Of a stretch of 64,000 nt of DNA, positions 184 to 38,689 are shown piece after piece. A model generated the notes under the pieces. The model saw only the letters and a program-made list of their open reading frames with translations. It was not told the DNA's origin and did no database searches. Positions within the stretch are counted from its first letter, which is position 1, and each line of letters starts with the position of its first letter. Location of the stretch: the sequence record MT028491.1, one strand, 5' to 3'. The position numbers and the translations under genes were made by a program.

Positions 184-651
184 TCATTTGACCAGCTTCC
201 TATGATTATCGACCATCTTTTGAAAAACATACGAAACAACATCAAATAGTTCATCACTACCTTTATTGTAAATTGCTCTTGTAATCCCATCAACGCTAAA
301 CATCACATAGCGCTTACAACATACAATAACATGTTGTTTACTATTTAAATAATAATGAAAAGAATACATATCCCCTTCTTCAACCTTCAAATAGTCTTTT
401 GAAGTTGCGGCGCTATAATGAAATAGGTAATAATAGGGATATTTAATATAGCCAGATACTATTTTGGAAGATTTGTCCGGTTCATTAAAAAGGAAGTCTG
501 GAATCCAGAATGTGAATCCTATATCTTTTCCACCCTTCCAACCAATATACTTATAATTGTGGTTAAGGGTATATCCATTGGATATAAAAAATGTCATACC
601 AAGACCCTTGATCTTATTCATTTCAAAAACAATGTCTGCAAGATTCACCAT
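184..651 (-). CDS. hypothetical early protein, C-terminal-His paralog family
   Basis: 155 aa ORF with upstream promoter; ends VFQKMVDNHRK (family motif). Confidence 0.75.
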   Translation of the reverse strand: MVNLADIVFEMNKIKGLGMTFFISNGYTLNHNYKYIGWKGGKDIGFTFWIPDFLFNEPDKSSKIVSGYIKYPYYYLFHYSAATSKDYLKVEEGDMYSFHYYLNSKQHVIVCCKRYVMFSVDGITRAIYNKGSDELFDVVSYVFQKMVDNHRKLVK

Positions 652-687
652 ACAAAAAGCCCTTCGGATACCTGATAATTTTTACAT

Positions 688-716
688 CAGATAACCCAAG
701 GGCTTAACAAAGTCAA
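688..716 (-). promoter_or_regulatory. sigma70-like early promoter
   Basis: TTGACT-N17-TATCTG upstream of the 155 aa ORF. Confidence 0.6.
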
Positions 717-724
717 TTACTATT

Positions 725-1177
725 TCAGTGTTGAAGTTTTTTATGCTCAAGAACTATCCAGTTGAATAGGGTTTCACAAAACTCATATTGCTTTTCTCCC
801 CTAATATAAAACTTCTGATAACACTCTATATGATCGATAGTGATAGAAGCAAAATTCAAGACTGGATATAGGTTAAGAGTTACGGTTGCTCCATCCACGA
901 TTTGTGTGAGGGATCGGAACCCGTTAACATTGATCGTCATTCGGGCTAAGCGGTCGCCAGATTTGGGATCATACCAAGTCAACGACACTTCATCCTTATA
1001 AAACGAATCTTTTTCGTTCATATTGATTTTTGCTGTTGACGTATCGAAAATATTCCGAAGCAATTTGAAAGGAACAGTTTTATGATGTGAATTCTTGTCG
1101 AAATCTGTTTCAAACAGAAATGTTTCGTTATCGATTGTTCTGGTTGGCAGAACCTTCCTCACTGGTATAAACGTCAT
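725..1177 (-). CDS. hypothetical early protein, C-terminal-His paralog family
   Basis: 150 aa; ends LFNWIVLEHKK. Confidence 0.75.
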   Translation of the reverse strand: MTFIPVRKVLPTRTIDNETFLFETDFDKNSHHKTVPFKLLRNIFDTSTAKINMNEKDSFYKDEVSLTWYDPKSGDRLARMTINVNGFRSLTQIVDGATVTLNLYPVLNFASITIDHIECYQKFYIRGEKQYEFCETLFNWIVLEHKKLQH

Positions 1178-1218
1178 AGGGATTCCCTTTTTTCAAGACA
1201 AAGTTATCCTGATAACGT

Positions 1219-2115
1219 TTATACCTGATTTTCAGTTCCCTTACAAATTTTCTGATAGGCAACTCTATGGCAATCTAGAATTAAATCCTTGATAACACCA
1301 ATCACTTCACCCTCAATTTTTTTGGTATCTTCGGCGTGTAATTGAACTCTACCATCATTATAAACTGTCATTATACCACCATACAAGCTATCATATATGC
1401 TTGAAAATGGCCTGCAATAATCTTGCATTATGTAAACGCAATCTGATTTAAAATCAAAAAATATGTTTTTCAATTCTAGAAAATCAGATGAAAACTCCAT
1501 TAATTGACAATCATCATCTTGGACATAAATTGAACCATCAGTTGTAACGAACAAGGGATTGGCTTCACCAACGTCAATCAAAGCATTTATTTCATTGGTG
1601 TTAGCCATATCAATAGTACCAATGACGGAATTAATATATGTCCACATTGTAAAGTGTATATCACATAAATTCATTCCATCTAAAGATTGCATATCAAGTT
1701 TACGTGGATACATCATGTAATACAAATCTTTTGACACATAAGATGCATTAATTAATGTATGAAATACTTCATTGTCTTTTTCTTTACATTGAATTATTAA
1801 ATCAAATTTAGACAATAATACTTTATATACATATTCTTTCACATTATCAGTATTATTTTTGTCAGTACAATATCCATAGAGTAAAAAATTATACATTGCA
1901 ACGTTAGGAGAACCCAATCTTGTTCGTACTGAAAAAGAATTCGGAACGCTACTTGGAAGACCAATTGAATAATAAAAATGTTCTGTTTTCAAATTCAATT
2001 CGCTATGATTCTCATGAAAAGTCATGCCACTGCGATTAAGATATGGCCAGTGAATATTTCTCTGGTTCTTTGATACATTTCGACTAGCCACAAAACTTTC
2101 ATGTACCTTGTTCAC
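1219..2115 (-). CDS. hypothetical early protein, C-terminal-His paralog family (long form)
   Basis: 298 aa; TVYNDG ... IKDLILDCHR. Confidence 0.75.
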   Translation of the reverse strand: MNKVHESFVASRNVSKNQRNIHWPYLNRSGMTFHENHSELNLKTEHFYYSIGLPSSVPNSFSVRTRLGSPNVAMYNFLLYGYCTDKNNTDNVKEYVYKVLLSKFDLIIQCKEKDNEVFHTLINASYVSKDLYYMMYPRKLDMQSLDGMNLCDIHFTMWTYINSVIGTIDMANTNEINALIDVGEANPLFVTTDGSIYVQDDDCQLMEFSSDFLELKNIFFDFKSDCVYIMQDYCRPFSSIYDSLYGGIMTVYNDGRVQLHAEDTKKIEGEVIGVIKDLILDCHRVAYQKICKGTENQV

Positions 2116-2771
2116 TTAAACAGCCTTTCAAAATCCTTGACGACAACCTTGAAAACTTCGTCATGTGACAGAGCCGCATATTGTTGTTTTGGACCACCTT
2201 CCAAAATATATTCGATATCACAAAATGAATGACTGATCGATTCAAGGTGATCACTGAAATCGGCCCCAAATACCCCACGGCAATATTCTACTGCTATCTT
2301 ATTGGCCTCATATTCCCATGGAAGTGTCATATATTCGTGAGACGCCAATATTGATGTTTTGGTGTTATAATATTTGCCATCCCAACAACAAACCGAATAG
2401 CTGATATTGTTAAGTCTCTTTTCATGGTACTGTTTAAAGTGTGCAATCTCATGCGCAATCATATAAATGATCGCCTCTTCTCTATGCTTGAAACCGCCTT
2501 TGAACAATCCATACAATACATGATAGAAATTGCTGACAATATTAAGACGATAGACATTATTGTCTTTATCGTACTGGATTGCCGAACCATTAAGAGAATC
2601 TTTGAATTTTCGGTTATAGGTGTGAGTGAAGAGAATCGTAATGTCTTCCTCACCTAGACCAGCCATGTCTACAATCTGGTTGCAGTGATTAATGACTTGT
2701 GATTCAGAAAGGCCGCTATTTTCAAAAAACTTTCTGCATTTAAATGACATATTATAATAAAACAAATTCAA
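2112..2771 (-). CDS. putative zinc metallopeptidase (SprT/ImmA-like)
   Basis: AHEIAHFKQ HExxH motif with downstream LPWEYEAN third-ligand motif. Confidence 0.7.
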   Translation of the reverse strand: MNLFYYNMSFKCRKFFENSGLSESQVINHCNQIVDMAGLGEEDITILFTHTYNRKFKDSLNGSAIQYDKDNNVYRLNIVSNFYHVLYGLFKGGFKHREEAIIYMIAHEIAHFKQYHEKRLNNISYSVCCWDGKYYNTKTSILASHEYMTLPWEYEANKIAVEYCRGVFGADFSDHLESISHSFCDIEYILEGGPKQQYAALSHDEVFKVVVKDFERLFK

Positions 2772-3244
2772 CCCCTCTTAAAGTATTCTAAATGATACTG
2801 CCAAATCTGATCAAGAATTCTTTTTAATAACTCATTCATATGATTGGTGACTACAATAACGTCATCTGATAGAAAGATATGCTTATCTTTTTCATCCCAA
2901 CCAATAAGAACTTCCCTGTCTCTTGTACCATGCCGTTCGTAATAACACATACCAACTTCATTAATTATTAAATTATATTTCCAATTACTCGAATTTCTAA
3001 ACCATTCAAAACTAATTGTTGGGTATTGACTATACTCATAGTCATGAGATTTGGCATTAGAAATATCGAAAATTTCGAACGGAAGGCATATACTTCTACT
3101 ATAGACGTTCCCATTATCATAATCACTTAGGTTATCATCTGCAATGGCAATTATGACATATCCATCATATAGACTAACAGTCATATGATCTTCATTTTTG
3201 TATTTTTCATAAAAATGAGATACGTTCTTTGGAAAGTCTGCCAC
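2768..3244 (-). CDS. hypothetical early protein, C-terminal-His paralog family
   Basis: 158 aa; ends ILDQIWQYHLE; overlaps the next gene by 4 nt. Confidence 0.75.
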   Translation of the reverse strand: MADFPKNVSHFYEKYKNEDHMTVSLYDGYVIIAIADDNLSDYDNGNVYSRSICLPFEIFDISNAKSHDYEYSQYPTISFEWFRNSSNWKYNLIINEVGMCYYERHGTRDREVLIGWDEKDKHIFLSDDVIVVTNHMNELLKRILDQIWQYHLEYFKRG

Positions 3245-3282
3245 ACTACACCCTAAAATAAAAGACTATGTTCAAGTCAACT

Positions 3283-3311
3283 TTATAGCTAACCTAAACA
3301 TAGTCTGTCAA
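3283..3311 (-). promoter_or_regulatory. sigma70-like early promoter
   Basis: TTGACA-N17-CTATAA, matching the alphaproteobacterial housekeeping consensus. Confidence 0.7.
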
Positions 3312-3317
3312 GTAATT

Positions 3318-3584
3318 TTAACCTAATCTCATACCTTCTGTACCGAAGGCATCGTTTGCTTCAAGATCGGAAAGTTCTTCCAAAAACGGAATAAAATCAT
3401 CGAAAATGAAGCGCCCGGTTTCCTTTGATTCCTCAAGCAATTCATTGAAGTTCTCACGAAGTTCCGAATAGTATTCGTCTTCGTCGGCCAGCCTATCCAC
3501 ATATTTCTTAACTTTATCTAGAATAGCTTCAAGACGTTCTGTCTTTAGATCATCAAAAATTTCAATAAAATCGTATAAATTCAT
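3318..3584 (-). CDS. hypothetical acidic protein
   Basis: 88 aa ORF co-oriented with its neighbours. Confidence 0.65.
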   Translation of the reverse strand: MNLYDFIEIFDDLKTERLEAILDKVKKYVDRLADEDEYYSELRENFNELLEESKETGRFIFDDFIPFLEELSDLEANDAFGTEGMRLG

Positions 3585-3596
3585 TTAAATATATTA

Positions 3597-3764
3597 TCAC
3601 TTTCTCAATTCATGCTTGATATCTTCAAGTTCATCAAGCATGTTCTCATAATCTTTTTTAATAAAATCAATAGTCTTATAAAAACCGTCATTGTTAATCT
3701 TGATCACTATTGACGCGATGATTAACCACACGACACAGGCAAAAAACATGCCTAAGAAAAACAT
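3597..3764 (-). CDS. small membrane protein
   Basis: Manually translated 55 aa, MFFLGMFFACVVWLIIASIVI...; TAATG coupling to the upstream ORF. Confidence 0.55.
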   Translation of the reverse strand: MFFLGMFFACVVWLIIASIVIKINNDGFYKTIDFIKKDYENMLDELEDIKHELRK

Positions 3765-3910
3765 TAATTGCACTTAGTACCTTTCATTCTTTGATTGCTA
3801 ATAAAACTCCATGTTGCCAATATGAAAACAGCGATAAGCTGATACACAGGTTGTGGCGAGCAAAATGCCACAAACCATAATAGAACATAAAAATCTAATT
3901 CTTGATCCAC
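3764..3910 (-). CDS. small hydrophobic protein
   Basis: Manually translated 48 aa, GTG start, hydrophobic core, fills the gap between ORFs. Confidence 0.45.
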   Translation of the reverse strand: MDQELDFYVLLWFVAFCSPQPVYQLIAVFILATWSFISNQRMKGTKCN

Positions 3911-3911
3911 T

Positions 3912-4769
3912 CTATAACCCTAACAAAGCATCGTCCAAATCTGTTAGCATTTTGTGACTTTGATATATGGTTTCACCCAAACGCTGTTTGAATTGATTAG
4001 AATAATATTCGCCCAAACCGTACATAAGGAAAGTTCCGTTCATCGTAATTCCCATATGTTGCAACTTGACAAACAGTTTTGATTGTTTTTCGGTATGAAA
4101 AACACGATGATGTTTTGGGGATAGTTTAATTTGTTTGGGCGAATATTTAATCCTGAAATTTTTCGGATTAAATGCATCAACAGACATAGAAAACATTTCA
4201 CCAAGAAAGAAATATTTGATAGTTCCTTCCGGGTGTCTCATGTATTGTATGCCACTCCCATCACTCAAATTACTATGTGGCCAATGAGGTTTGTCGATGT
4301 GCCATGAAAACGCCAGCAATAATTGATACATAGTGATCAGATCACAATGCACTCTATTATAGAGAGTCCCCATATCTTCAAGATCAAAGCCATTATTAGT
4401 CTTATCCCAACTGGTCACATCATTAACTATTACATTACCATTGCCAGTTTGATTGCTGGTATATGCAAGTAAGATATTGCTTGGATTAAATGGTAAACTG
4501 GCCTTATGCTGTTCTATGTAAAACCCATCTGCATTGATATAGATGGAAACATCACTACGACTGGTTGATATCTTAACAAACATCAATTCTTCAATGACTT
4601 CAAATGTTGAATTATTGTCAATGAAAAAATCAACTGTCTCTAAAAGAAACCATATCTTGCTGGTATCTGACATGTCTATAGTAGCATTCACACGCCGCAA
4701 TATACCCTTACCATGCTTCAACAGCCAATGGGTTTCGGCAAAATAATGAGCGCTTTCCATATGAGACAT
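3912..4769 (-). CDS. hypothetical early protein, C-terminal-His paralog family (possibly tandem domains)
   Basis: 285 aa; IYINADG and ITMNG hairpin motifs; LGETIYQSHK. Confidence 0.75.
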   Translation of the reverse strand: MSHMESAHYFAETHWLLKHGKGILRRVNATIDMSDTSKIWFLLETVDFFIDNNSTFEVIEELMFVKISTSRSDVSIYINADGFYIEQHKASLPFNPSNILLAYTSNQTGNGNVIVNDVTSWDKTNNGFDLEDMGTLYNRVHCDLITMYQLLLAFSWHIDKPHWPHSNLSDGSGIQYMRHPEGTIKYFFLGEMFSMSVDAFNPKNFRIKYSPKQIKLSPKHHRVFHTEKQSKLFVKLQHMGITMNGTFLMYGLGEYYSNQFKQRLGETIYQSHKMLTDLDDALLGL

Positions 4770-4831
4770 TTCAGAATTCCTATGTTTACAATTTCAATTG
4801 ACACATTCCTAACATCAAAATTAGGATTGTG

Positions 4832-5050
4832 TCAACTCAAAATCTTAAATGAAACAAAGCCAAACAACACAACCCATCCGGCTATCAACAGCCAAGAAAA
4901 TACAGCCGCATCGTCGCTTTCGGCGGTTTGCCACATGTACAACAAACCAGCACCAACCAACATCAAACAAAACAGAATCGCTAATTGAATCATCATGTTA
5001 TATAATGCCACTCCATAATCTCTATAATTGATGTAGAACCGAACACACAA
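4832..5050 (-). CDS. small two-helix membrane protein
   Basis: Two hydrophobic segments; true start may be the internal MMIQ. Confidence 0.55.
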   Translation of the reverse strand: MCVRFYINYRDYGVALYNMMIQLAILFCLMLVGAGLLYMWQTAESDDAAVFSWLLIAGWVVLFGFVSFKILS

Positions 5051-5235
5051 TAAAGCCTATCCATAGCTTGTTCTTCCTGTAGGGTTCTCTCACCACGAAC
5101 AACATCAATCTCTTTGAAATGACATTTTCCGTTTACACTGACCATCAAGGCCACTTTTCTATGCGAAATAGGTTGCATATGTGTTCCTCTTGCTATCTGT
5201 AACATTGTGTAATAATGTGTTACAAACAGCCGCAA
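4993..5235 (-). CDS. hypothetical protein
   Basis: ORF in a minus-strand run; likely start at MQPISHRK. Confidence 0.45.
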   Translation of the reverse strand: MRLFVTHYYTMLQIARGTHMQPISHRKVALMVSVNGKCHFKEIDVVRGERTLQEEQAMDRLYCVFGSTSIIEIMEWHYIT

Positions 5236-5314
5236 ATCAACAATTTGATTAAAATTTTATTGACTTATGCACAGAAAAATAGCCAAGCCTTAAAATCGAC
5301 TTGACTATTTATTT

Positions 5315-5509
5315 TTACGAATTTGGAACAGAAAAACTATCACTCGATTCAGTGATTTCTTCACCATCAAGAATCAGTTTGACCTTGACAGTATGCCAAA
5401 CACTATCACCACCACTCCAATGATCCGTTTCCAGATTAACTTGCACTTCAAGGGTTTCCTTTAGGAATTCCTTCAAAGCCTTCTTTAGAGCTTCATCCAC
5501 TGACAACAC
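5315..5509 (-). CDS. hypothetical protein
   Basis: 64 aa ORF overlapping the upstream gene. Confidence 0.6.
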   Translation of the reverse strand: MLSVDEALKKALKEFLKETLEVQVNLETDHWSGGDSVWHTVKVKLILDGEEITESSDSFSVPNS

Positions 5510-5771
5510 TCCTATATTCTTTGACAGACGCCTTGAGCTTCAACCAGATTGGTTCAAAGCTTTCATGGCGGAAACCTTCCATTTCCAGACAATCACGAAT
5601 GTATTTGAGACTACGTTCCTTATTCAAAAGAATGTCTGGAAAATCACAACATGTATTAATCATGTAATGAGCTTTCCATGACTTGATATAACCACACCCT
5701 TGGGTGCTATTACAAAACTCTTGAAACTCATTAACAATGTGAGAAATAGTGCGTTCTTCGACAGTAGCCAT
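5493..5771 (-). CDS. hypothetical protein
   Basis: 92 aa with RBS (AGAGGG) and promoter upstream. Confidence 0.65.
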   Translation of the reverse strand: MATVEERTISHIVNEFQEFCNSTQGCGYIKSWKAHYMINTCCDFPDILLNKERSLKYIRDCLEMEGFRHESFEPIWLKLKASVKEYRSVVSG

Positions 5772-5805
5772 TGTTCAACCCTCTTTAGGTTAATATTATG
5801 GCTAC

Positions 5806-5834
5806 TATCTAACCTAACATGATACTTATGTCAA
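5806..5834 (-). promoter_or_regulatory. sigma70-like early promoter
   Basis: CTTGACA-N17-TAGATA. Confidence 0.6.
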
Positions 5835-5995
5835 GATTTTTTTAGGATAACATCAACATTATTATAACCGGCATCAAATTGAACTTTTTGATCACCACCA
5901 TATTTAATAATAGCTCTTTCTACAATCTCGGCAAGTTCCGACAAAGTACCTTCAAAATCCCCCAATCCTTCAACATATTCCAATTCTTCATACAT
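5831..5995 (-). CDS. hypothetical protein
   Basis: Manually translated 54 aa, MYEELEYVEGLGDFEG...; TAATG coupling. Confidence 0.55.
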   Translation of the reverse strand: MYEELEYVEGLGDFEGTLSELAEIVERAIIKYGGDQKVQFDAGYNNVDVILKKS

Positions 5996-6680: not shown

Positions 6681-6687
6681 AACATAT

Positions 6688-6695
6688 AATAAATA
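6688..6695 (+). promoter_or_regulatory. T4-type late promoter variant
   Basis: AATAAATA 55 nt upstream of a structural gene; overlaps a divergent early promoter. Confidence 0.5.
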
Positions 6696-6749
6696 CAGTT
6701 GTCAACTCAAAACTAAACATATCTTAAAAAATTAAGGACGGATAAGAAT

Positions 6750-7328
6750 ATGGCTATCAAAGAGATTTTGACGGATGTAGAGCTTGTTGGTAAGGGCTTG
6801 CCAGCACGTGAAAATATCCAGCGTATTAATGAAAACTTCCAAGAATTGTCCGGTGGCGGTGGAGAAACAACCCCCGTTGATTGGAACGATATCGAAAACA
6901 AGCCTGCATTTGGTACAGCGGCAACAACCAATTCAACCGCTTATGCTACAGCCGCACAAGGCACAAAAGCTGATACTGCCGTACAGCCTGCCGCATTGGA
7001 TGCTAAATTGGATAAGCCATCTGGTGGAACGAATGCTCAACTCATTCGTGGTGACGGTTCTACTGTTGCAGCTTCCACTTATGCAACCGCTGCAAATTTG
7101 ACATCTGGTCTAGCTGCAAAGCTTGACAAACCAGCCGGTGGAACATCAGCACAATTGATTCGTGGTGATGGTACAACAGTTGCTTCGAATACCTTTGCTA
7201 CATCAACACAAGGAACAAAGGCTGATAATGCGGTTCCAAAGACTGTAATTACGGCCCTTGATGCTGGTGAAACTGACCTAGCTACAATCGTCGCAAAGAT
7301 CAATGAAATCATTGCAGCACTCGACTAA
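6750..7328 (+). CDS. virion fibre/decoration protein
   Basis: N-terminal RINENFQEL anchor-type motif; two LDKPxGGT..LIRGDG..ATxxQGTKAD repeats shared with tail fibres; C-terminal VAKINEIIAAL coiled coil. Confidence 0.65.
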   Translation: MAIKEILTDVELVGKGLPARENIQRINENFQELSGGGGETTPVDWNDIENKPAFGTAATTNSTAYATAAQGTKADTAVQPAALDAKLDKPSGGTNAQLIRGDGSTVAASTYATAANLTSGLAAKLDKPAGGTSAQLIRGDGTTVASNTFATSTQGTKADNAVPKTVITALDAGETDLATIVAKINEIIAALD

Positions 7329-7332
7329 GATT

Positions 7333-8482: not shown

Positions 8483-8739
8483 TCAACCTCTTCTGGTAGT
8501 TCGGAACGATTGACATAGAAACCATCAGCATCTTCTTTAATAGAAATCATTTTGAATTCCTTGTTATTGAAGAATGCAATGAACGTTTTCTCTTTATCCA
8601 CAATGATTTCTCTGATCCCGCAATGCATGATCAGATTTTCAAGCGCCAAAGAAAGCTTGATGTGTTTCTTAATGTCCATGACGATATTCTCCATAGATTG
8701 ATTTTTCTCACTCTTAGCACGTTCTTTATAAATAGTCAA
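8479..8739 (-). CDS. hypothetical protein
   Basis: 86 aa ORF; true start uncertain. Confidence 0.55.
   Translation of the reverse strand: MTIYKERAKSEKNQSMENIVMDIKKHIKLSLALENLIMHCGIREIIVDKEKTFIAFFNNKEFKMISIKEDADGFYVNRSELPEEVE
8727..8734 (+). promoter_or_regulatory. T4-type late promoter
   Basis: Perfect TATAAATA, plus GATAAATA at 8751, upstream of the tail fibre gene. Confidence 0.7.
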
Positions 8740-10687: not shown

Positions 10688-12331
10688 ATGACTACAATTC
10701 GAATTACTGAATTGGATAGGAATACTAGCCCTTCCAAAACAGATTTGCTTGCTACCGACAATACAACAACTGGAACAAGAGCATCTACTATTGAAGAAGC
10801 TGTTAATTCAGTTGTCAAGAAAGCCAATAATGAAGAGGCTGTAACCGGTACAGACAATACCAAATTCATGACTCCAGAAAGCACTAAGACCGCAATTGAT
10901 GGTCTTAGTGTTCCTAAAACTCGCACTATTAGCACCACTTCTGATTTAACAGGTGGTGGAGCGCTTACAGGTAATTTAACAATTGGACTTTCATCTGGTG
11001 TAATTGCAAATTTAGCCAAAGCAAATACATCAGTTCAACCAGAACAACTTGAATTAAAACTTGACAAACCGTCTGGTGGTACAAATGGAGATTTGATTCG
11101 CGGTGATGGTTCTCTTGTTGCGGCGAATACCTTTGCAACAAACACTCAAGGTGCTTTAGCTGATACTGCCGTTCAACCGTCTCAATTAACTGCATATGCA
11201 CTCAAATCAGAAAATGATTTGAAGCTGGATAAACCAGTTGATGGAACAGCTAACAACATCATCAAAGGTGATGGTACAATTGTAGAATTAAGCACTTTGG
11301 CAACTTCTGACCAAGGAACGAAAGCCGATAATGCTGTATTATTTACCGGTCAAAATCTTACTGAAACACAAAAATCACAAGCAAGAAACAACATTGGTAC
11401 AGACTATCTAAACCCATATAGAAACAAATTATTGAATGGGGGATTTAGTGTCGCACAAAGAGGAAATGGACCATTTACACAAAATGAATACACACTAGAT
11501 CGATGGTACTTATTTAATGGTTCTGGTTCTGTAAATGAAATAAAAAGAATTAACACTACAACCAACGATTATAGCAGTGGAGTTCTTCCAAGATCAACAC
11601 AATATAACGTTGAATGGAAGAGAAGTGCTTCTGGAACAGAAACAAGTTGGTTTGGCCAGCGTATTGAAGGTGTACATCATCTAACTGGTCGAAAAATTAC
11701 TTTAACATTTTATGCCAAAGCTTTACAGCCAGTTAAACTTTTCCCATACGTCCACCAATCTTTCGATAATGTTGAAGCTGATCCTCTATACACACCATTT
11801 CCAGATGTTAACATAACAACAGAATGGCAAAAATTTACTTATACAATAGATTTACCGCTATCATTAAACATTGATACAATTGGTTATAATAGTTATGCTA
11901 ATATTTTTTTCAACTGGTATAATACAGAACCAAATACAACTATAACTATATCAAGAATATCCGTAGTTGAAGGTGATGCAACTTTAGAAAGTGATCCATT
12001 TTCACCAAGGCACATTCAACAAGAATTAGCTCTTTGTCAAAGATATTATCAAAATTCTATTGTTAGATTTAAAGTTGGACAAACCCAAGTAGGACAGACA
12101 TTTTACATAACTAGTCAATCCCTTCCAGTTGAAATGAGAATAATTCCAACAATCACTTCCAATAATCAAAGTGTGTTTACTCAAAATAATACGGACACTA
12201 TAACAACATCATCAAATTTAATTGTGGCAATCACCGCGACCACAAAAACATTAAGAATTAACGGACAATACAACGGCGCGGGAAATACATCTGGATTTTC
12301 TTGTGATGTATTTGCTATGGCCGAATTATAA
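10688..12331 (+). CDS. tail fibre / receptor-binding protein with C-terminal carbohydrate-binding-like module
   Basis: LDKPxGGT..IRGDG repeats; KADNAVLFTGQNLTETQKSQARNNIG; RNKLLNGGFSVAQRG...EGD...ELALCQRYY...PVEMRIIPT. Confidence 0.85.
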   Translation: MTTIRITELDRNTSPSKTDLLATDNTTTGTRASTIEEAVNSVVKKANNEEAVTGTDNTKFMTPESTKTAIDGLSVPKTRTISTTSDLTGGGALTGNLTIGLSSGVIANLAKANTSVQPEQLELKLDKPSGGTNGDLIRGDGSLVAANTFATNTQGALADTAVQPSQLTAYALKSENDLKLDKPVDGTANNIIKGDGTIVELSTLATSDQGTKADNAVLFTGQNLTETQKSQARNNIGTDYLNPYRNKLLNGGFSVAQRGNGPFTQNEYTLDRWYLFNGSGSVNEIKRINTTTNDYSSGVLPRSTQYNVEWKRSASGTETSWFGQRIEGVHHLTGRKITLTFYAKALQPVKLFPYVHQSFDNVEADPLYTPFPDVNITTEWQKFTYTIDLPLSLNIDTIGYNSYANIFFNWYNTEPNTTITISRISVVEGDATLESDPFSPRHIQQELALCQRYYQNSIVRFKVGQTQVGQTFYITSQSLPVEMRIIPTITSNNQSVFTQNNTDTITTSSNLIVAITATTKTLRINGQYNGAGNTSGFSCDVFAMAEL

Positions 12332-15260: not shown

Positions 15261-15647
15261 TTAAATGAATGTCAATGGACCAGCAAAAACGAATAAACCG
15301 ACATATGGACTAAGCACAATAGAATAAAAAAATTTACACAATACATGCCCAAGCTGATCTTGATTGAACGTTATGTACTTGTCACATTTTGCATTATCCA
15401 ATAGCCAATGACAAGACAATTCCATCATACCAAATCCCAATGCAAGAACATGGTTTCCGGTTGCAATAGCGACAATGATAGCCACAAATCCAGCATGAAT
15501 AAAACAATGAGCAAACATTGCATGTTTCCAAGGAATAATCTCTTTTTCCTTGTGAGGATTTTTCTCTGTTGCCAAAATACCCTGTAACGGATAATCAGCC
15601 AAGAAATGAGCAAAAACGAACAGCAAGAAAATCTCAACCATAATCAA
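15261..15647 (-). CDS. DUF3307-like membrane protein
   Basis: AHFLADYPLQ...HCFIH...HWLLD conserved His pattern with TM helices. Confidence 0.7.
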   Translation of the reverse strand: MIMVEIFLLFVFAHFLADYPLQGILATEKNPHKEKEIIPWKHAMFAHCFIHAGFVAIIVAIATGNHVLALGFGMMELSCHWLLDNAKCDKYITFNQDQLGHVLCKFFYSIVLSPYVGLFVFAGPLTFI

Positions 15648-16132
15648 CCCTCTAATGTTTCTGTGTGAATTTTTCTAATAGCTTGAAAAAATCCATTGGC
15701 TTCTTTTAAAATCCATGTTGAGGTTTCATCAAACGTCTTCATATCCGTTACCTGTATTGTCCCGTCCTTATCATGACCATGCCAATTGATATCGATTCTA
15801 TTGTTAAATGAAACCGCACGTTGATTCCTAACAATATGTCGATATGACATTATACCGTCTTTATAAACAGATAAATCAACATATATGTCAGCATCAAACC
15901 ATTCCAGTTGAACAATATGTTCTGACTTAACCCCTATTCTCAAATTTTGAGCATTCAAAAAGGCATATGGGATAGTAATGTATGGGATATACTCAAAACC
16001 TTGATAAAAAAGTCCTCTTGGTGATAAGACAAATTTATCAGTATTGCTTATAATATCTCCCCATGGATCAAGACCGGTATGATACGCAAACGTCATACCG
16101 AACCTTCTTAACTGGTCTTTAGAAAACGTCAT
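15644..16132 (-). CDS. hypothetical early protein, C-terminal-His paralog family
   Basis: 162 aa; LSVYKDG ... FFQAIRKIH. Confidence 0.7.
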   Translation of the reverse strand: MTFSKDQLRRFGMTFAYHTGLDPWGDIISNTDKFVLSPRGLFYQGFEYIPYITIPYAFLNAQNLRIGVKSEHIVQLEWFDADIYVDLSVYKDGIMSYRHIVRNQRAVSFNNRIDINWHGHDKDGTIQVTDMKTFDETSTWILKEANGFFQAIRKIHTETLEG

Positions 16133-22154: not shown

Positions 22155-23036
22155 ATGATTATAAATGCTGGCCTTTCACAAGGCGCAAAAGCCGGTTGTG
22201 TGAATAATGCAACCGGTGAATTCTGTACCAACTGGTATCTGACATCGGACGGTATGGGAGAAATTAGTTTTACAAAAAATCATGTCATCGGGTTTAAAGA
22301 TTATAATCCCGGTGGCAAACTCTATTTTGAGACAATTATTGAATTGTCAAGAGAATATATTAAAGGCGAACGTTATGTTTTTAGCTTTGATGCTAGTACC
22401 GTTGATTACCCGAAAGCTAAAATCAAGGCGAGATTGACAGACGATTTTGGAAATGTTTCATGGGGTGAATTCACGTTACGTGAAACAACAAATCAATTCT
22501 CAATGGTTGTGGTTCCAGATAAAAGAACAGATTACAGACTTAGAATTGTTCTTCATGATAAATCTGTTGATGTTGTCAATGCCCAATGTAAATCTTTTCA
22601 ATTCGGCAATTTCAGAATGAATAGAGGCATTGAACCAGATATCAAAATCATCACAAATTCAGATGATGTTCAAACTGTCAAGCGAGTATTTAGAGAATAT
22701 GACGAATTGGTGATTGACATCTGTAAGACCGGAAATGATCGTTTTACAGCTACAGCGACTTGGAATGATCCTATGCGACTTGTTCCAAAGGTATCTTTTA
22801 CCGGCTTGAAAATGAAACTGTTTCACAAGGATTACACATTCACTACTGATATTATGGTAGATACCCGTTGTGTTCTAAATTCTCATATATCTCCGAATGG
22901 AATTACTGTTAAGTGTTTCTTTGAAGATGTTTATTCGGGTAGTCTGTCACAGTTTTTTAGTCGTATTGAAACAGGTGAATGGTTTAAAGGAATTGTTGAG
23001 GATCATGTTATATTTGATAGTAGGATTATCCCATGA
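22155..23036 (+). CDS. stand-alone carbohydrate-binding-like module, divergent RBP paralog
   Basis: YVFSFDA, FGNFRMNRG, DPMRLVPKV align by eye with the fibre C-terminal module. Confidence 0.6.
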   Translation: MIINAGLSQGAKAGCVNNATGEFCTNWYLTSDGMGEISFTKNHVIGFKDYNPGGKLYFETIIELSREYIKGERYVFSFDASTVDYPKAKIKARLTDDFGNVSWGEFTLRETTNQFSMVVVPDKRTDYRLRIVLHDKSVDVVNAQCKSFQFGNFRMNRGIEPDIKIITNSDDVQTVKRVFREYDELVIDICKTGNDRFTATATWNDPMRLVPKVSFTGLKMKLFHKDYTFTTDIMVDTRCVLNSHISPNGITVKCFFEDVYSGSLSQFFSRIETGEWFKGIVEDHVIFDSRIIP

Positions 23037-31508: not shown

Positions 31509-32469
31509 TAAAAATTTATTAAATGCTACATTTCAAAATAATCCTTCTATACTAAGTGGTTACAGAAACAAGATTATCAATGGTGATTTCGGTATTTGGC
31601 AAAGAGGAACTACGTTTTCTTCATCTGGATATACGGCTGATAGATGGGGCTTGTCTCTAAATGGTAGCCCTGTTTCCACTGCTTCTGTAAGCCGTCAAGC
31701 GTTTCCAATGGGTGACGCTTCGATACCGGGAAATACAGAAAGTTATTGGAGACTAAACATAACCAGTGGTGGCGATGCTACCTATGGCTTTGTTGGTGCT
31801 TATCACCTAATTGAGAATGTAAGAAATCTAGCTAATACCAAAGTAACCCTAACATTCTATGCTAGAGCCGATGTTGCGGGAAAGAAAGTTGGAATTGGTA
31901 ATCCACAGAGCTTTGGTTCTACTGGTGATCCAAGAGTTGATAGACATATCGGAATAGCAACTCTTGATACTTCGTGGAAGAAATTTCAATTTGTCTGGAC
32001 CGTTAATTCTATTACTGGAAAAACTCGCGGCGGTGGAAATGATTGGGTTGGTATTGAATACTATTTTTCTGCCGGAACCAATTATGATGCTAGATCGGGT
32101 GGAATTGGTATTCAAACAGGTATTATTGATATTGCTCGCGTTTCTCTTGTAGAAGGTGATGCTTCTAATGAATTTGATCCATTTTCACCAAGGCATTATC
32201 AACAAGAATTAGCACTTTGTCAGAGATATTGCTGTGTTGTTAAAACCGGTATTCAAATTTCAGCATCTGGATTTGGTCTTTCATATTTCTATTTTCCAGT
32301 ACAAATGCGAGCAACACCAACTTATACCACATTAAATACCGGTTATATAAATAATGCCACTTCACAAACAGTTGGTGATATTACAGTTACAGGTGGATAT
32401 ATTCAAATTCAAGCAACAGCCGCTAATGGTTATATAACAGGTTGGTATGGCTTGTTTACAGCCGATTAA
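31501..32469 (+). CDS. receptor-binding protein, carbohydrate-binding-like module
   Basis: YRNKIINGDFGIWQRG...EGD...ELALCQRY...FPVQMRATPT. Confidence 0.8.
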   Translation: MVNKNLLNATFQNNPSILSGYRNKIINGDFGIWQRGTTFSSSGYTADRWGLSLNGSPVSTASVSRQAFPMGDASIPGNTESYWRLNITSGGDATYGFVGAYHLIENVRNLANTKVTLTFYARADVAGKKVGIGNPQSFGSTGDPRVDRHIGIATLDTSWKKFQFVWTVNSITGKTRGGGNDWVGIEYYFSAGTNYDARSGGIGIQTGIIDIARVSLVEGDASNEFDPFSPRHYQQELALCQRYCCVVKTGIQISASGFGLSYFYFPVQMRATPTYTTLNTGYINNATSQTVGDITVTGGYIQIQATAANGYITGWYGLFTAD

Positions 32470-32487
32470 TTTTAAAAGGAATTTCAA

Positions 32488-33042: not shown

Positions 33043-34112
33043 TCATGACTAAAGCATTTCAGATCGGGAAAGTCATTACAGGACTTTCCACCGGTCAATA
33101 TAATAATAGTTTGAGTGGTTTCAGAAACAAAATCATCAATCCAGATTTTGAAATTACACAAAGAGGGGGATCGTTCCCATTCGCGATCAACACAGGTGCT
33201 GGTTCTTATACTTTGGATCGCTGGCGATATGCTGGTTCAAATACATTTGGAAACGCTGTGACTATAAGTCAACTGGCAATGCCATCTGGATATAATGGAA
33301 TTCCCGGTTATGTTAGATATTATGCAAGGCTTAATAGAACAACAACTGGTACAGGTCTTACAGCACTTCAACAAAGAATCGAAGGTGTAAGAACATTGGC
33401 TGGAAAGCGTTCTACATTAACATTTTGGGTTCGTGGTACAAATGATAAGATTATTAAGACGCAAATACAACAAGTTTTCGGAACTGGAACTCCTACACCA
33501 TCACCAGTTGTTGAAGTTGTTTCAGCCGGAATTAGCGCAACATTGACTTCAACATTTACACGATATGATGTTGTATTTGATATGCCTTCCATTGATTCGG
33601 CTTCTGTTTATGGTGCTGATGATCGTGTAGAAGTATCATTTATTCTTTATGAGAATCAGGGAAATGCCCAATTTGATATCGCTCACGTTTCATTGGTTGA
33701 AGGTGATGCTAGGAATGATCCTGATCCTTGTGCACCACGCGATTTAGGAACCGAATTAGACCTTTGTAAGAGATACTATCAAAGAATTGATGTAGATGGT
33801 TCTGTTTGGCTATTAGGTCAAACATCTATTGCAACGTCTACTAGAGCATATGTTCTATTGGATTTTGAAAAAGAATTCAGAGTACGACCAAGTGTTGCTT
33901 ATATAGGTGGAAGTGCATCTTATTTTGATGGTGTTAGTTGGCAATATACAACAACACAAGTAGTGGCAATACAAGGCCCTATGCGAGTCCAGTTTTCAGT
34001 AACCGTTCCAGCTATTCAACCACCGGGTAATGCTGGTGCTACATGTTGGCTAATTAATTTCAATAAAATTGGTGGCGGGGTTGGATATATCGAAGGCCAT
34101 GCCGAATTATAA
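33039..34112 (+). CDS. receptor-binding protein, carbohydrate-binding-like module
   Basis: FRNKIINPDFEITQRG...EGD...ELDLCKRYYQ. Confidence 0.8.
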   Translation: MIMTKAFQIGKVITGLSTGQYNNSLSGFRNKIINPDFEITQRGGSFPFAINTGAGSYTLDRWRYAGSNTFGNAVTISQLAMPSGYNGIPGYVRYYARLNRTTTGTGLTALQQRIEGVRTLAGKRSTLTFWVRGTNDKIIKTQIQQVFGTGTPTPSPVVEVVSAGISATLTSTFTRYDVVFDMPSIDSASVYGADDRVEVSFILYENQGNAQFDIAHVSLVEGDARNDPDPCAPRDLGTELDLCKRYYQRIDVDGSVWLLGQTSIATSTRAYVLLDFEKEFRVRPSVAYIGGSASYFDGVSWQYTTTQVVAIQGPMRVQFSVTVPAIQPPGNAGATCWLINFNKIGGGVGYIEGHAEL

Positions 34113-34124
34113 TGAGAATATGAC

Positions 34125-34637
34125 ATGACACAACCATTAATAATCTATCAATACGCAAACCCGGAACATTCTGTCATCAAGGATAGCAGGGGTAATTTTA
34201 TCCCTGTAAACCCTGACAGTAGACAGTATCAGGAATTCCTCAAGAACCATGACTTGAGCGAAGTTCGCGTTTATACGGCCCCTAAAGTCGATTTGAACGC
34301 ATATCTAGCGGCTGTTCGATATAAGTTTGAAACGGGTGGCATCTATATCAACGGAATGTTTGTTGCAACCGACGACCGTTCCAAGACGATGATAATTGGC
34401 GCTCGCGCTATGGCAGATACCAATAAAGACTATGTTCTGAAATGGAAACTAGGCAACGGTAATTTCATCAACTTGGATGCTGGAACCATCATTTACATTT
34501 CAAACACGGTTCTCCAACATGTTCAAAAATGTTTCGATATCGAAGGTGATATTTCTGATTTGATTGCCAAAAAAGAAATCAGAACGGTTGAACAGATTGA
34601 CCAACTATTTAAAGAGAAATTAGAAAAAGGGGCTTAA
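34125..34637 (+). CDS. tail fibre assembly chaperone (DUF4376-like)
   Basis: FIPVNPDSRQYQEFL; RYKFETGGI..TDDRS..WK..NGNFINL...VQKCF. Confidence 0.75.
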   Translation: MTQPLIIYQYANPEHSVIKDSRGNFIPVNPDSRQYQEFLKNHDLSEVRVYTAPKVDLNAYLAAVRYKFETGGIYINGMFVATDDRSKTMIIGARAMADTNKDYVLKWKLGNGNFINLDAGTIIYISNTVLQHVQKCFDIEGDISDLIAKKEIRTVEQIDQLFKEKLEKGA

Positions 34638-34649
34638 TAGCCCCTTTTT
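34625..34649. terminator. bidirectional intrinsic terminator
   Basis: AAAA-GGGGCT-TAAT-AGCCCC-TTTTT at a convergent junction. Confidence 0.85.
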
Positions 34650-35151
34650 ATTTGCCCAAAAAAATCATTCTATGGCACGTTATTATCGAATGAATTATGC
34701 ATTCAACCATTGCATATTCTTTGGTATTATTTTTAAAAGTATTTTCATAAACTTGTGAAAAATCAACAAGATTATGATTTTCGTTATAGTATCCACCTTC
34801 AAAAAAGAATATTTGACAATAATCCTTATAAAGAACCATTGTCCATCGACCCATTTCTTCTAAACAAACATCACCATCTTCATAGACTCCTAAGATGAAT
34901 TCTCTTTGCCCTACTCGCCATGTAATTTGAATACAATGATTATATTCTACAATAGAATGTAGATTTTCTTTCAGATTAAATAAACAGTCGTAAATGGAGA
35001 AAACACGACCATTTTCCTTGTATTCAATATATGTAGAATTATTAATATTTTTCCTTTTTTGTAGAACGCATACATTTCTCAAATCTTGCATCACGCATTC
35101 TTGAAGAACGCCTATGAATAACTTCTGATCATCATGCATGGACATAACCAT
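34648..35151 (-). CDS. hypothetical early protein, C-terminal-His paralog family
   Basis: 167 aa; LGVYEDG ... IIHSIITCHR. Confidence 0.75.
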   Translation of the reverse strand: MVMSMHDDQKLFIGVLQECVMQDLRNVCVLQKRKNINNSTYIEYKENGRVFSIYDCLFNLKENLHSIVEYNHCIQITWRVGQREFILGVYEDGDVCLEEMGRWTMVLYKDYCQIFFFEGGYYNENHNLVDFSQVYENTFKNNTKEYAMVECIIHSIITCHRMIFLGK

Positions 35152-35712
35152 ACCTCATATCATACAAATCATGATGACAAGCTATCAGTGATTTCATAAT
35201 CAATTCTGCCACAATGGGAATGTCTTCATTGAATTCTTTTAGACGTTCTAGGCTATGGCCCCAAAATAGAAGTTTATGAGCTTCATATCTGAATCCATTT
35301 GAATATGCCACCAGTCATCATTGAATTCTATAAGGCGTTGATGAATCGATAATTGAGGCGGAACTTGAATACCACTATCATAAAGATTTGACGAATCCCA
35401 AGTAAAAACACGTTTATGAGAAAACCGTTCTTTAACACAAACACATTTGTCAAAGATGTTGAAATATTCCCTTTCAACATACAAAGTAGGAAGACGATCA
35501 TTTAGACTTACAGCGACATTTCTTGTTTCTTTGCTGATCGAGTTTGGAACTTCTACAAATATATCAGAACATTGTTGAATAAGGTTCTCTATAAGAAAAC
35601 CTATGTGTTTATTGACAATTTTTGTAACATCTTTTTCCACTTTATAAAGTCCCGTATGATTTGTTAAGAGCGTATTTTTCATAAAGTCTATGTGATTTGA
35701 CAATGTTATCAA
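35132..35712 (-). pseudogene. frameshifted member of the C-terminal-His paralog family
   Basis: The 154 aa ORF (35248-35712) lacks the motif, but the -1 frame from ~35314 reads LVAYSNGF...LIMKSLIACHHDLY and stops at 35132. Confidence 0.6.
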
Positions 35713-36175
35713 CTATTGTTTCAATCATGTCAACATCATATTGCGACGATTGACTAACATGTTTTGAAGAATTGTATAAAGAACCACCATGTCTGTTGAT
35801 TAAATTAAATTTCTTCTCACCATCTTCATTAATAAATTTTACACCCCAACCATATTGATAAATGCAAAAAGAAAAGCTGTTTGGCCCTACGCAAACCATA
35901 TTGCCATTTTTTACTTTTGGATATGTTATTTTCCAAAGTGTTTTACCATCGGCACCGGGAGGATCAATTTGGATACCATCCAATGCTAGAAAATCATATG
36001 AGAATGTCAATTTTTCAGAACCTAATATTTTAGCCAGATCGGGACTACACCCATCAACCGCAATGATTTTACGCCAAGGTTCTTCAATCCAGCACTCATA
36101 ACCTAGAGAATGCAAGTCTTGTTGAAGTTTTTCAAATCTCGCCTGTTTAAACCCACTAACAAAACTATCGCTCAA
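35642..36175 (-). CDS. hypothetical early protein, C-terminal-His paralog family
   Basis: 177 aa; IVDNIVKSHR. Confidence 0.75.
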   Translation of the reverse strand: MSDSFVSGFKQARFEKLQQDLHSLGYECWIEEPWRKIIAVDGCSPDLAKILGSEKLTFSYDFLALDGIQIDPPGADGKTLWKITYPKVKNGNMVCVGPNSFSFCIYQYGWGVKFINEDGEKKFNLINRHGGSLYNSSKHVSQSSQYDVDMIETIVDNIVKSHRLYEKYALNKSYGTL

Positions 36176-36665
36176 GATATGTGTTCCTATGTTGATTCAC
36201 CATGACATTCACAAATGCATTTAAACCACAAGCAAGAGCCATGTTGTCTTTATTGTGTTCTTGTAAGTAAATAACATTATCGGCATTTTCTATTGAAAAT
36301 TGTTTTTTCACATGATCCCAATTCAATATATGTGTACCACTGATAGAAAACCTAAATATTCCTTCTTTTGGTAATACAGAAAAACCAACTGTCGTTGGCC
36401 AATTACTATGCGTTGGCCAATAAAAACGAATTCCAATATCATCCAATGAATATGTTCCACTGATACTAGAAATATCAAAATAACTATCGAACATGGTTAT
36501 ACAGTCTAAATTAATGATTTTTTTCAGATTTTGAGATACATTTTTAAGATGAATTTGCGTACCGTGCTCATCTTTAGTTGTCGATAAATCACACAATGGA
36601 TGAAGGTATTTAATAAATTTCGCTGTACATTCCGCTTTTTCAAATTTTGTCAATGGTTTTATCAA
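36165..36665 (-). CDS. hypothetical early protein, C-terminal-His paralog family
   Basis: 166 aa; FVNVMVNQHR. Confidence 0.75.
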   Translation of the reverse strand: MIKPLTKFEKAECTAKFIKYLHPLCDLSTTKDEHGTQIHLKNVSQNLKKIINLDCITMFDSYFDISSISGTYSLDDIGIRFYWPTHSNWPTTVGFSVLPKEGIFRFSISGTHILNWDHVKKQFSIENADNVIYLQEHNKDNMALACGLNAFVNVMVNQHRNTYLER

Positions 36666-37176
36666 TGAAACACCCCACTTCTTTTCCTTTTAAAGATTGT
36701 TCTCTGTGAGCATCTACAACCGTTTCAAATAGCAATCTTACGGCTTTATAAACTTTGGAATTACAGGTACATCTAGATTCAGCTTCATCAGAATTTTGTC
36801 TTCTAACAGACATGAAATAGCTAGTCATATAGATTTTGAGAAATTTAGAATCTCCTGAAACCTGATATGTGATGATTTCTCTGTCATTGAAACCAATCCT
36901 AAATTTTAGGCCACCCTTTTCATAGGTTATTACGTAATTATCTATAGTGTTTCCAACGACCGTATAATTGTATTCTTTGAAACAAGTGATTTGATCAAGA
37001 TTTAACAAATTGAGGCAAAAAGAAAGACGTTCTATCTGTGGAGTATCAAATTTTATGCGTAAAATCATCCCCTTATTTAGAAACTGATATCCCATATCTT
37101 CAATAGGATTTATGATGTTATTTTGAACATCATAATCGATTGCGTCAATAACCCTTTTAGATAAAGAAATGGTCAT
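36640..37176 (-). CDS. hypothetical early protein, C-terminal-His paralog family
   Basis: 178 aa; LFETVVDAHR. Confidence 0.75.
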   Translation of the reverse strand: MTISLSKRVIDAIDYDVQNNIINPIEDMGYQFLNKGMILRIKFDTPQIERLSFCLNLLNLDQITCFKEYNYTVVGNTIDNYVITYEKGGLKFRIGFNDREIITYQVSGDSKFLKIYMTSYFMSVRRQNSDEAESRCTCNSKVYKAVRLLFETVVDAHREQSLKGKEVGCFIDKTIDKI

Positions 37177-37993
37177 TTAAGCTAATTGCCTCTTCCGTTA
37201 CAGCCTTTACAAAATCTTTCATATTACAATCATAAAGTCCAGACGAATTGATTGAATTGAATTCAACAATCTTCGGCTTTCCTTCTGAAATGGCAATATC
37301 AATGGTGTAATTTTGATCAGCCGATGCAAACAGATGAATGTTGTCTTGAGCAAATTCCTTTGCCAGATCAAAATTCTCATACAAATTGACATGGTTTTCT
37401 TCATAGGAATATTCACCATATCCAACGATCTTTCCACCAACAACAAAGAACCTGTATTCTTGCTCAATAGGTTTTGGATCAGCGACCAAGAGCATGTCAG
37501 TAGGAAACAGACTATAGGTGTTTTCAACCACTACAGCATCGTCATAGCCCATATCCCATACAAAGCCTGTAAACGTCTTATAGTGAATGTTTGGCTTGAT
37601 AAAGAGCTTTCCACTAGTCTGGAATTTTTGCTTAATCATGCCCCATGTTTCAAAGCGAGCATCGGCATTCAAAAAGGTATTCAGCTTACCATATGACATA
37701 GCCATAGACGGTTTGAACAAATCAGAATGGAATTTGAAAATTACATGCTTTGGCGACAATTCACGTTCAACGTAATTACAGAATCGAATACCGCCATACG
37801 GGATCACAATGCGTTCATCGCCATCAGGAAGCTTAAGAGGCTCATTGTGAAAAGGATCAAATTTGGTTTCAATTACAGCTTCATTACCATAAATTGACCG
37901 TACAACATCAGGGAGATTTCCCCATTTTTTTCCAGCAAACGGTGTCATATCCATTAGCCAAACTACTTTATCACTAGACAATAAAAACTCCAT
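37157..37993 (-). CDS. ATP-grasp protein (R2K/DUF4343-like)
   Basis: LFIKP..K.F.G, EYRFFVVGGKIV, TIDIA...IVEFN..NSSGLY motifs. Confidence 0.8.
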   Translation of the reverse strand: MEFLLSSDKVVWLMDMTPFAGKKWGNLPDVVRSIYGNEAVIETKFDPFHNEPLKLPDGDERIVIPYGGIRFCNYVERELSPKHVIFKFHSDLFKPSMAMSYGKLNTFLNADARFETWGMIKQKFQTSGKLFIKPNIHYKTFTGFVWDMGYDDAVVVENTYSLFPTDMLLVADPKPIEQEYRFFVVGGKIVGYGEYSYEENHVNLYENFDLAKEFAQDNIHLFASADQNYTIDIAISEGKPKIVEFNSINSSGLYDCNMKDFVKAVTEEAISLNDHFFI

Positions 37994-38020
37994 TAAGGCA
38001 ACCAGTTAAATTAGGATTAA

Positions 38021-38049
38021 ACATTACATAAAAACATACAAAAAGTCAA
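38021..38049 (-). promoter_or_regulatory. sigma70-like early promoter
   Basis: TTGACT-N17-TAATGT immediately after a terminator. Confidence 0.65.
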
Positions 38050-38051
38050 AT

Positions 38052-38090
38052 AAAAATGCCCCTAAGAGGTTGGAATTCTTAGGGGCATTT
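38052..38090 (-). terminator. intrinsic terminator
   Basis: 14-bp stem AAATGCCCCTAAGA/TCTTAGGGGCATTT followed by a U-rich tract on the minus strand. Confidence 0.8.
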
Positions 38091-38131
38091 GAGCGGGTTT
38101 CTAGTGTCTATTTTGAAGAGGCGACATCCCG

Positions 38132-38689
38132 CTATCGGTCATTAGTTTTTCCAACTAATTTTAAATCAATAAGCTGTTTATGACAGAACTTAATTGCAGT
38201 GAACAGATCACAAATAGAATGGTTCATAGGATCACGTTTGTCAATAACATTCACGATATTAGTACCATCTTTTGTAGAATATTTTGTCAATTCTACCGTG
38301 TCAACATTATTGATTTTGGTAAATGAATGTTTTTTTACATAACCACCTTCACTTGCATAAAATATTAATGTGAAATGATCATCACAAATAGTCATAGAAT
38401 GAAAAAGAAATCTATTATTCAATCTATCCAGAACGTTTTCATCGTCTGTGTATGTACCAGACTTTCTCTGTAAGAGAATTTTTCGCGGTTGATTAGGTTC
38501 ATTTGTTACTTTGAAATGGAGAAAATCCAAATCAATTGATTCTGATGAAACGAAATAAATCGAATCTTCTCTTACAAAGGATACTATGCCACTAGCATAT
38601 ATAAATGCAATTATTTCAGAATGGAGATTATCCTTCCAAATCCCCAAACTGTTGATGCAAACTTCAAAACTGGAAATAATATCGGACAA
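38132..38689 (-). CDS. hypothetical early protein, C-terminal-His paralog family
   Basis: 185 aa; LFTAIKFCHK. Confidence 0.7.
   Translation of the reverse strand: MSDIISSFEVCINSLGIWKDNLHSEIIAFIYASGIVSFVREDSIYFVSSESIDLDFLHFKVTNEPNQPRKILLQRKSGTYTDDENVLDRLNNRFLFHSMTICDDHFTLIFYASEGGYVKKHSFTKINNVDTVELTKYSTKDGTNIVNVIDKRDPMNHSICDLFTAIKFCHKQLIDLKLVGKTNDR

Follow-up and report, generated by a model that had tools for sequence, protein, structure and literature searches.

A dispersed, highly diverged gene family with a shared C-terminal histidine helix in the jumbo phage vB_OspM_OC

We analyzed a 64-kb stretch of DNA (64,000 nucleotides, hereafter the window) that is identical to bases 163655–227654 of Ochrobactrum phage vB_OspM_OC (GenBank accession number MT028491.1) and forms the 3' end of that genome. 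The phage is a T4-like jumbo myovirus of 227,654 bp that was isolated from sewage and is filed under Kyanoviridae. A first-pass annotation, made from the sequence alone, had described a dispersed gene family in this window whose members end in the same C-terminal helix, with the pattern two hydrophobics-x-x-[IMV]-x-x-x-H, usually followed by R or K. The eleven intact open reading frames (ORFs) for which it quoted C-terminal strings are all present on the minus strand at the low coordinates given below, and R or K follows the His in 9 of them. They correspond to phiOC_p304, p305, p306, p308, p312, p338, p363, p365, p366, p367 and p369, all of which are annotated as "hypothetical protein".

The family genes in the window (all on the minus strand) fall into two clusters and one singleton. 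Cluster 1 begins at the left edge with the N-terminal third of phiOC_p303 (1–164; full protein 153 aa), a member that is cut by the edge and whose His helix lies just beyond it. It continues with p304 (184–651, 155 aa; the His is residue 150 and is followed by R), p305 (725–1177, 150 aa), p306 (1219–2115, 298 aa), p308 (2768–3244, 158 aa) and p312 (3912–4769, 285 aa). In p306 the helix is found on the C-terminal part only, and the N-terminal half bears no relation to the family profile; p306 is a probable member, with support at the level of the motif only. p312 also carries the C-terminal helix and is a probable member. The singleton p338 (15644–16132) encodes 150 to 162 aa, depending on the start codon. 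Cluster 2 consists of p363 (34648–35151, 163 to 167 aa), p365 (35642–36175, 177 aa), p366 (36165–36665, 162 to 166 aa), p367 (36640–37176, 178 aa) and p369 (38132–38689, 185 aa). p366 overlaps both flanking genes in an operon-like manner, and elsewhere the family genes also overlap or abut their neighbours in co-oriented runs. A twelfth copy in a shifted frame had been proposed and proved to be real: the p364 region (outer bounds 35132–35712) holds a family copy broken by one frameshift, with no other defect seen. Its pieces, read separately, carry a family-like body and the His helix. GenBank lists a truncated ORF only at this place.

The frequency of the C-terminal motif was compared with that in shuffled sequences. 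A strict pattern (two hydrophobics-x-x-[IMV]-x-x-x-H-[RK] within the final 35 aa) was counted in 98 non-overlapping ORFs of the window and in 500 shuffles. It occurs at 7 C-termini versus 0.13 ± 0.35 in the shuffles, and not once in the protein interiors; the motif is much commoner at these C-termini than in shuffled sequence, which was one of the points on which the first-pass annotation had made its claim depend. The looser pattern used there gave 12 matches versus 2.2 ± 1.4 in shuffles. Genome-wide, about 12 unrelated ORFs also match the looser pattern, in line with the shuffle expectation. An upstream beta-hairpin motif had been ascribed to most members. This holds in part: a Gly 27 to 28 residues before the His is found in p304, p306 and p312; eight other members show a similar turn 54 to 74 residues before the His and several have no turn at all.

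The remainder of the genome was fetched as separate loci and each was scanned for carriers. We found 12 extra carriers: p024–p027 (21.4–23.6 kb), p097 (78 kb), p217, p218, p221 and p225 (135.7–139.5 kb), p247 (148.8 kb), and p302 and p303, which directly abut the window. With these, the family counts 23 intact carriers and one broken copy (about 24 genes, roughly 6% of the phage genes), arranged in runs of adjacent genes. The earlier picture of two clusters and a singleton thus holds inside the window, but cluster 1 runs past the left edge into p303 and p302, and four more groups lie elsewhere in the genome. The length is 150 to 189 aa in 19 of the 23 carriers and the His lies 2 to 21 residues from the end. 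It is followed by R in 11 carriers, by K in five and by another residue in seven (R/K in 16 of 23). p026 and p367 contain a single His each, which is the conserved one. The family genes have 32.9% G+C as compared with 38.1% for the genome.

The His codon is CAT in 15 carriers and CAC in eight, the hydrophobic codons of the motif vary freely, and the pairwise nucleotide identity is 0.46. Since the motif codons differ freely between copies, conservation acts on the protein and not on a DNA element. A repeat search found no DNA repeats linking the family genes. A recent duplication or a shared DNA element was accordingly considered and rejected. The Arg after the conserved His is encoded by AGA or AGG in 11 of 11 genes, one transition away from the Lys codons of five other members.

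The first-pass annotation recognized no named family and proposed a lineage-specific expansion, and the searches agree with it. In Pfam-A, PHROGs, NCBIfam and PADLOC, no family was matched above a curated cut-off or at a convincing E-value, and no curated family was matched by more than one member. The best matches are residues 103–164 of p218 against Pfam IP_trans (E 0.0011; 19.1 bits, below the cut-off of 21.3) and phrog_28405 at E 0.002. Profiles run against PDB sequences gave E 0.08 or worse. A profile of nine window members, searched against 1.84 billion representative proteins, returned those nine and three further proteins; two of these are tandem-repeat proteins and the third (3313 aa) had no matched stretch. 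Word-seeded searches with p363 and with a 19-paralogue alignment (A3) returned only proteins of this phage, and a tblastn search of p367 against 50,697 phage records returned only this phage itself. The ten sequence clusters that were looked up are all singletons containing only vB_OspM_OC. Synteny did not lead to relatives either: the ATP-grasp gene next to the family has no close relative in IMG/VR, and a search with UvsW led only to loci at 32% identity that hold no family members. The family is described neither in the genome paper (PMC7139368) nor in a survey of 224 jumbo phages (PMC7824862), which mentions vB_OspM_OC only as a member of group 2.1 (Iyer et al., 2021). With a significant shared signature in 23 + 1 copies and its absence from the other genomes searched, the set is a phage lineage-specific multigene family in the descriptive sense.

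Homology beyond the helix was examined by leave-one-out profiles, in which the helix was removed from the training and the test sequences (two runs, 19 to 20 members among about 660 sequences). Four of the 19 to 20 members ranked in the top 4 in both runs, a level reached by none of the reversed controls. These are p308 (rank 1 in both runs, the strongest body-level support), p338 (ranks 1 and 2), p026 and p247. p305 ranked 9 (of 682) and 90 in the two runs. p247 was missed by the genome profiles, yet it gave this leave-one-out signal; p312 gave a weak signal (body-only profile E 0.08, third among the non-training genes). An hhalign comparison of window with non-window members gave a local P of 0.002 over the last 41 columns, a stretch longer than the 10-residue motif. 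Pairwise BLASTP among the members detected nothing significant, an iterative hidden Markov model search of the genome, started with the nine window members, added no new significant member, and a search with the 19-member profile added no new member. We are highly, though not completely, confident that the 19 single-domain proteins form one family, and regard p306, p312, p225 and p247 as probable members. Outside the family, p351 ("putative GIY-YIG protein", 22155–23036, plus strand) fits the loose C-terminal pattern and is a recurrent weak match of the body-only profiles (E 0.0013–0.12 in four leave-one-out runs). This is probably an effect of composition.

AlphaFold2 prediction of p363 with alignment A3 gave a confident model (predicted local distance difference test score, pLDDT, 80.1; predicted template modelling score 0.73). 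The model has a helix at residues 7–27, ten antiparallel strands, a short helix at 55–58 and a long C-terminal helix at 144–165. When the alignment columns were mapped on it, the strands alternate between conserved hydrophobic and variable positions and both terminal helices are amphipathic. His160 lies within the hydrophobic stripe of the C-terminal helix (residues 149, 152, 153, 156, His160 and 164). This column pattern suggests a two-layer alpha/beta sandwich with one exposed, variable sheet face. The proposal that a conserved helix serves as scaffold while the surface diversifies gains from the model, in which the His sits in the hydrophobic stripe and the strands have one conserved and one variable face. 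The prediction for p338 with 11 window sequences reached a pLDDT of 51 and was confident only for a four-strand meander and the C-terminal helix, two elements that are also seen in the p363 model. A 155-aa BFVD entry, which is probably p304, superimposes on the p363 model with a template modelling score (TM) of 0.53–0.57 and a root-mean-square deviation (rmsd) of 4.2 Å. The BFVD model of p363 itself, built without alignment A3, agrees poorly with the A3 model (TM 0.39). A Foldseek search of PDB with the p363 model found no match at E 0.001 or better, and a search with the low-confidence p338 model was uninformative. One BFVD entry, the 151-aa viral protein I1VX52, matches the p363 model over its full length (E 5.8e-3, probability 0.99, TM 0.39–0.42) and, judged from the models, may be the sole outside relative by fold.

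The genes next to the family were inspected for function and for signals of expression timing. Three of the neighbours, p368, p370 and p307, are conserved and belong to phage-wide families. p368 (37157–37993, minus strand), inside cluster 2, is annotated as "putative D-alanine D-alanine ligase" and is an ATP-grasp protein of the R2K clade (R2K_3, E 4e-17; R2K_2, E 5e-17; phrog_7313). p370 carries a QSregVF_b domain. p307 (2112–2771, minus strand, 219 aa), in cluster 1, contains an HExxH motif and matches phrog_10499 (E 1.8e-9) and phrog_16532 (E 1.5e-8). It matched no Pfam family and may be a metallopeptidase.

A sigma-70-like pattern was found at 17 sites in the window, eight of them within the 6.2% of the DNA that is intergenic. 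Two of the eight stand at the head of family-gene runs on the minus strand: a putative promoter at 38021–38049, 28 nt upstream of p368, would head p368-p367-p366-p365-p364-p363, and one at 39505–39533, 38 nt upstream of p370, would head p370-p369. A terminator-like hairpin is located just before the former, and -35-like boxes are also present in the intergenic DNA before p304, p308 and p312. The octamer of T4-type late promoters was found on the plus strand at 8727, 20976, 24679 and 32346, with sites 40–75 nt before the tail-fibre genes p325, p349 and p354. On the minus strand it occurs at two distant sites only, and in the window it precedes no family gene. Six octamers in total against 6.6 expected by chance make only their placement suggestive. 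Both the late octamer and the sigma-70 hexamer pattern were taken from general knowledge and were not derived by a tool, so the promoter results are to be read as leads. The early orientation claimed for the family holds as far as the minus strand is concerned, but capsid and tail genes elsewhere in the genome share this strand, and strand alone thus gives no timing. Early expression is plausible from the placement of these predicted sites.

Other features of the same DNA were noted during this work. A hairpin with a 20-bp stem between p309 and p308 (3263–3306, minus strand) encloses a TTGACA ... TATAAA promoter-like pair, and a palindromic -35-like pair lies before p312 (4770–4831). A 29-nt GC-rich terminator-like hairpin with a T-run occurs twice, at 41533–41561 and 52166–52194, in copies that are 97% identical and 10.6 kb apart. 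The tail-fibre/"glycosylase" genes p320, p326, p359 and p361 share repeated DNA modules of 70–140 nt with 66–75% identity (11943–12045, 32126–32228 and 33673–33775; also 6912–7255 and 11053–11337). Such modules suggest shuffled receptor-binding segments.

Several known systems resemble the family in part. Lineage-specific paralogue expansion is known from Bacillus phage G, with a roughly 35-copy zinc-ribbon family, and such expansions in jumbo phages have been read as adaptive in conflict or regulation (Iyer et al., 2021; PMC7824862). The family in vB_OspM_OC likewise consists of many diverged copies of a small domain in one large genome, clustered among accessory genes, but the domain is different from the zinc ribbon and has no recognizable relatives. 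The members also resemble the orphan genes of hyperplastic regions in being small, fast-evolving and phage-specific, in lying between conserved modules, and in having host-type promoters, which are predicted sites here. Hyperplastic regions of T4-type phages hold small, fast-evolving, phage-specific genes between conserved modules, which are expressed from host-type promoters and some of which counter host defences. In fold, p32/gC1qBP/MAM33 also places an N-terminal and a C-terminal helix on the same face of a sheet, with consecutive antiparallel strands between them in the sequence. p32 gave the highest TM among PDB entries, 0.30–0.32, which is not significant (E 0.39–0.61, rmsd about 17 Å), and Pfam MAM33 was not matched among the members scanned. 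p32 is uniformly very acidic, whereas the predicted isoelectric points of the family range from 4.7 to 8.9 and the net charges from -14 to +4. A role as DNA mimic, which would call for a uniformly acidic protein, was rejected by the same spread of isoelectric points. The grand average of hydropathy is negative or near zero in all members, which gives no hint of membrane proteins. The presence of a single invariant polar residue speaks against a classical active site.

Our preferred explanation, to which we assign a probability of about 0.45, is that the genes form a multigene family, not described before and private to the phage, whose products are early binding proteins without enzymatic activity. 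The copy number, the deep divergence, the private distribution, the decaying copy and the combination of a conserved core with a variable face would fit birth-and-death evolution of binders at a conflict interface. One frameshifted copy is as expected for such evolution. A number of results weigh against this explanation. Body-only hhalign between window and non-window members gave P 0.6–0.7, which is noise and equal to the controls. The leave-one-out ranks were unstable between runs (p027 fell from 1 to 157 and p097 from 1 to 356), and reversed sequences also drift upward, so composition contributes to the ranks. The body alignment has nine strongly hydrophobic columns versus 4.2 ± 1.5 in unrelated gene sets and 4.6 ± 2.1 (maximum 9) in shuffled family bodies, a coherence only about 2–3 standard deviations over the controls. 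The family profile misses p306 and p225 as well as the N-terminal piece of p364, and there is one confident model only, that of p363, the second having the low pLDDT given above. PADLOC did not tie the family to any defence system, and the genome paper (PMC7139368) contains no expression, virion-content or interaction data. The claim of one fold for all members stands to the extent that body homology is statistically visible for a few of them; the profile-profile comparison of the bodies does not extend it to the rest. A single common fold is likely, and is proven for part of the set only.

The main rival restricts the kinship to the C-terminal helix. This would be a portable module for docking or targeting, such as a handle to a shared partner, that spread by 3'-end recombination among accessory genes and sits on bodies that are not all related. 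Such a module would explain the negative body-only hhalign and the restriction of the significant signal to the last 41 columns, the lack of a body-level leave-one-out signal in about half of the members, and the double-length p306, p312 and p225, which bear the same tail on different N-terminal parts. The narrow size range of the carriers does not fit with it, nor does the body homology in a subset, and in the confident model the helix is integral, half-buried and paired with the amphipathic N-terminal helix seen in most members. Moreover, the genes are no less diverged in the motif codons than elsewhere and are not linked by DNA repeats, so there is no sign of recent segment transfer. We consider a shared helix alone unlikely. 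A quite different possibility is that the proteins bind small molecules in a helix-grip (START/PITP-like) pocket with the His contacting the ligand, and serve either as carriers or as sponges that take up host signalling molecules. In the model, the elements follow one another as helix, three strands, short helix, seven strands and long helix, an order that resembles START domains; the large antiparallel sheet, the long C-terminal helix that closes it, the N-terminal helix and the short helix after the third strand are as in the START/PITP/Bet v 1 (SRPBCC) proteins, and the His is on the buried side of its helix. The family proteins are, however, shorter (150–190 aa). Human StAR (3p0l_C) ranked fourth in the Foldseek search of PDB, but at E 0.15 and TM 0.20 the match is not significant. 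No member matched an SRPBCC or START/PITP sequence profile above threshold; the IP_trans match of p218 is sub-threshold and stands for one of 19 aligned members, with none when the other window copies and neighbours were scanned with Pfam. There is no second conserved polar residue to line a pocket, and a single ligand class would hardly account for two dozen copies. This makes ligand carriers or sponges a doubtful proposition.

Paralogous families of jumbo phages are often virion proteins, and the family could comprise proteins that are packaged in the head and ejected along with the DNA, comparable to the polymorphic internal proteins of T4-type phages or to the inner-body paralogues of phiKZ-like jumbo phages. 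The group p024–p027 adjoins baseplate and capsid genes, as might be expected for such proteins. T4 internal proteins share an N-terminal targeting peptide, whereas in this family conservation lies in the C-terminal helix and the N-termini differ, and the copy number is far higher. The initiator Met is the sole invariant N-terminal residue in A3, which means that no shared N-terminal capsid-targeting or cleavage peptide is present. The missing late octamer before family genes in the window and the sigma-70-like sites at the head of two runs also speak against packaging, and we regard it as improbable. The last alternative is that no real family exists and that the pattern arose by chance or composition in AT-rich orphan genes. 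It could draw on the lack of significant BLASTP matches between members, on the background of the loose pattern in the genome and on the composition effects visible in the reversed controls. It is close to refuted by the excess of the strict motif over shuffled sequences and its absence from protein interiors, by the carriers being adjacent genes of one size class, by the top leave-one-out ranks that no reversed control reached, and by the rise of AlphaFold2 confidence with the paralogue alignment.

If the genes are indeed phage-private binding proteins, the family would have arisen by old, repeated duplication followed by divergence to 10–20% identity, and would probably be transcribed early by the host RNA polymerase. 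Each copy would be a small, soluble cytoplasmic protein, in which N- and C-terminal amphipathic helices lie over one face of an antiparallel sheet of roughly ten strands and hold the scaffold. The His in the buried stripe would most likely be structural or anchor a ligand internally, and not be catalytic. The exposed, fast-changing sheet face and loops would make a set of non-enzymatic binders that recognize different host or competitor molecules. The motif and its enrichment, the clustering, the lack of outside relatives in the databases searched, the predicted architecture of one member and selection at the protein level are shown by the present data. The common fold for all members, the early timing and the binding function are inferred, and any role in host takeover or anti-defence would be conjecture. 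A more far-reaching version is rather speculative, and we think it more probably wrong than right: a new alpha/beta-sandwich fold was amplified to about 24 copies, either as an arsenal in which each copy neutralizes a different host defence or factor via its variable sheet face, or as a set of proteins that all dock via the His helix on one partner and deliver different targets to it.

As the p363 model illustrates, an alignment of paralogues alone can be enough to make structure prediction work for orphan phage genes. If our explanation is correct, a single protein family, not described before, accounts for about 6% of the genes in a jumbo phage, without a relative in about 15 billion public proteins or a significant match to any solved structure. 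Its one invariant His, which is half-buried, would provide a precise handle for structural work. Protein families that expand and diversify in this way in viruses usually sit at the host-virus interface, and the family would thus be a compact candidate set for new host-binding or counter-defence proteins.

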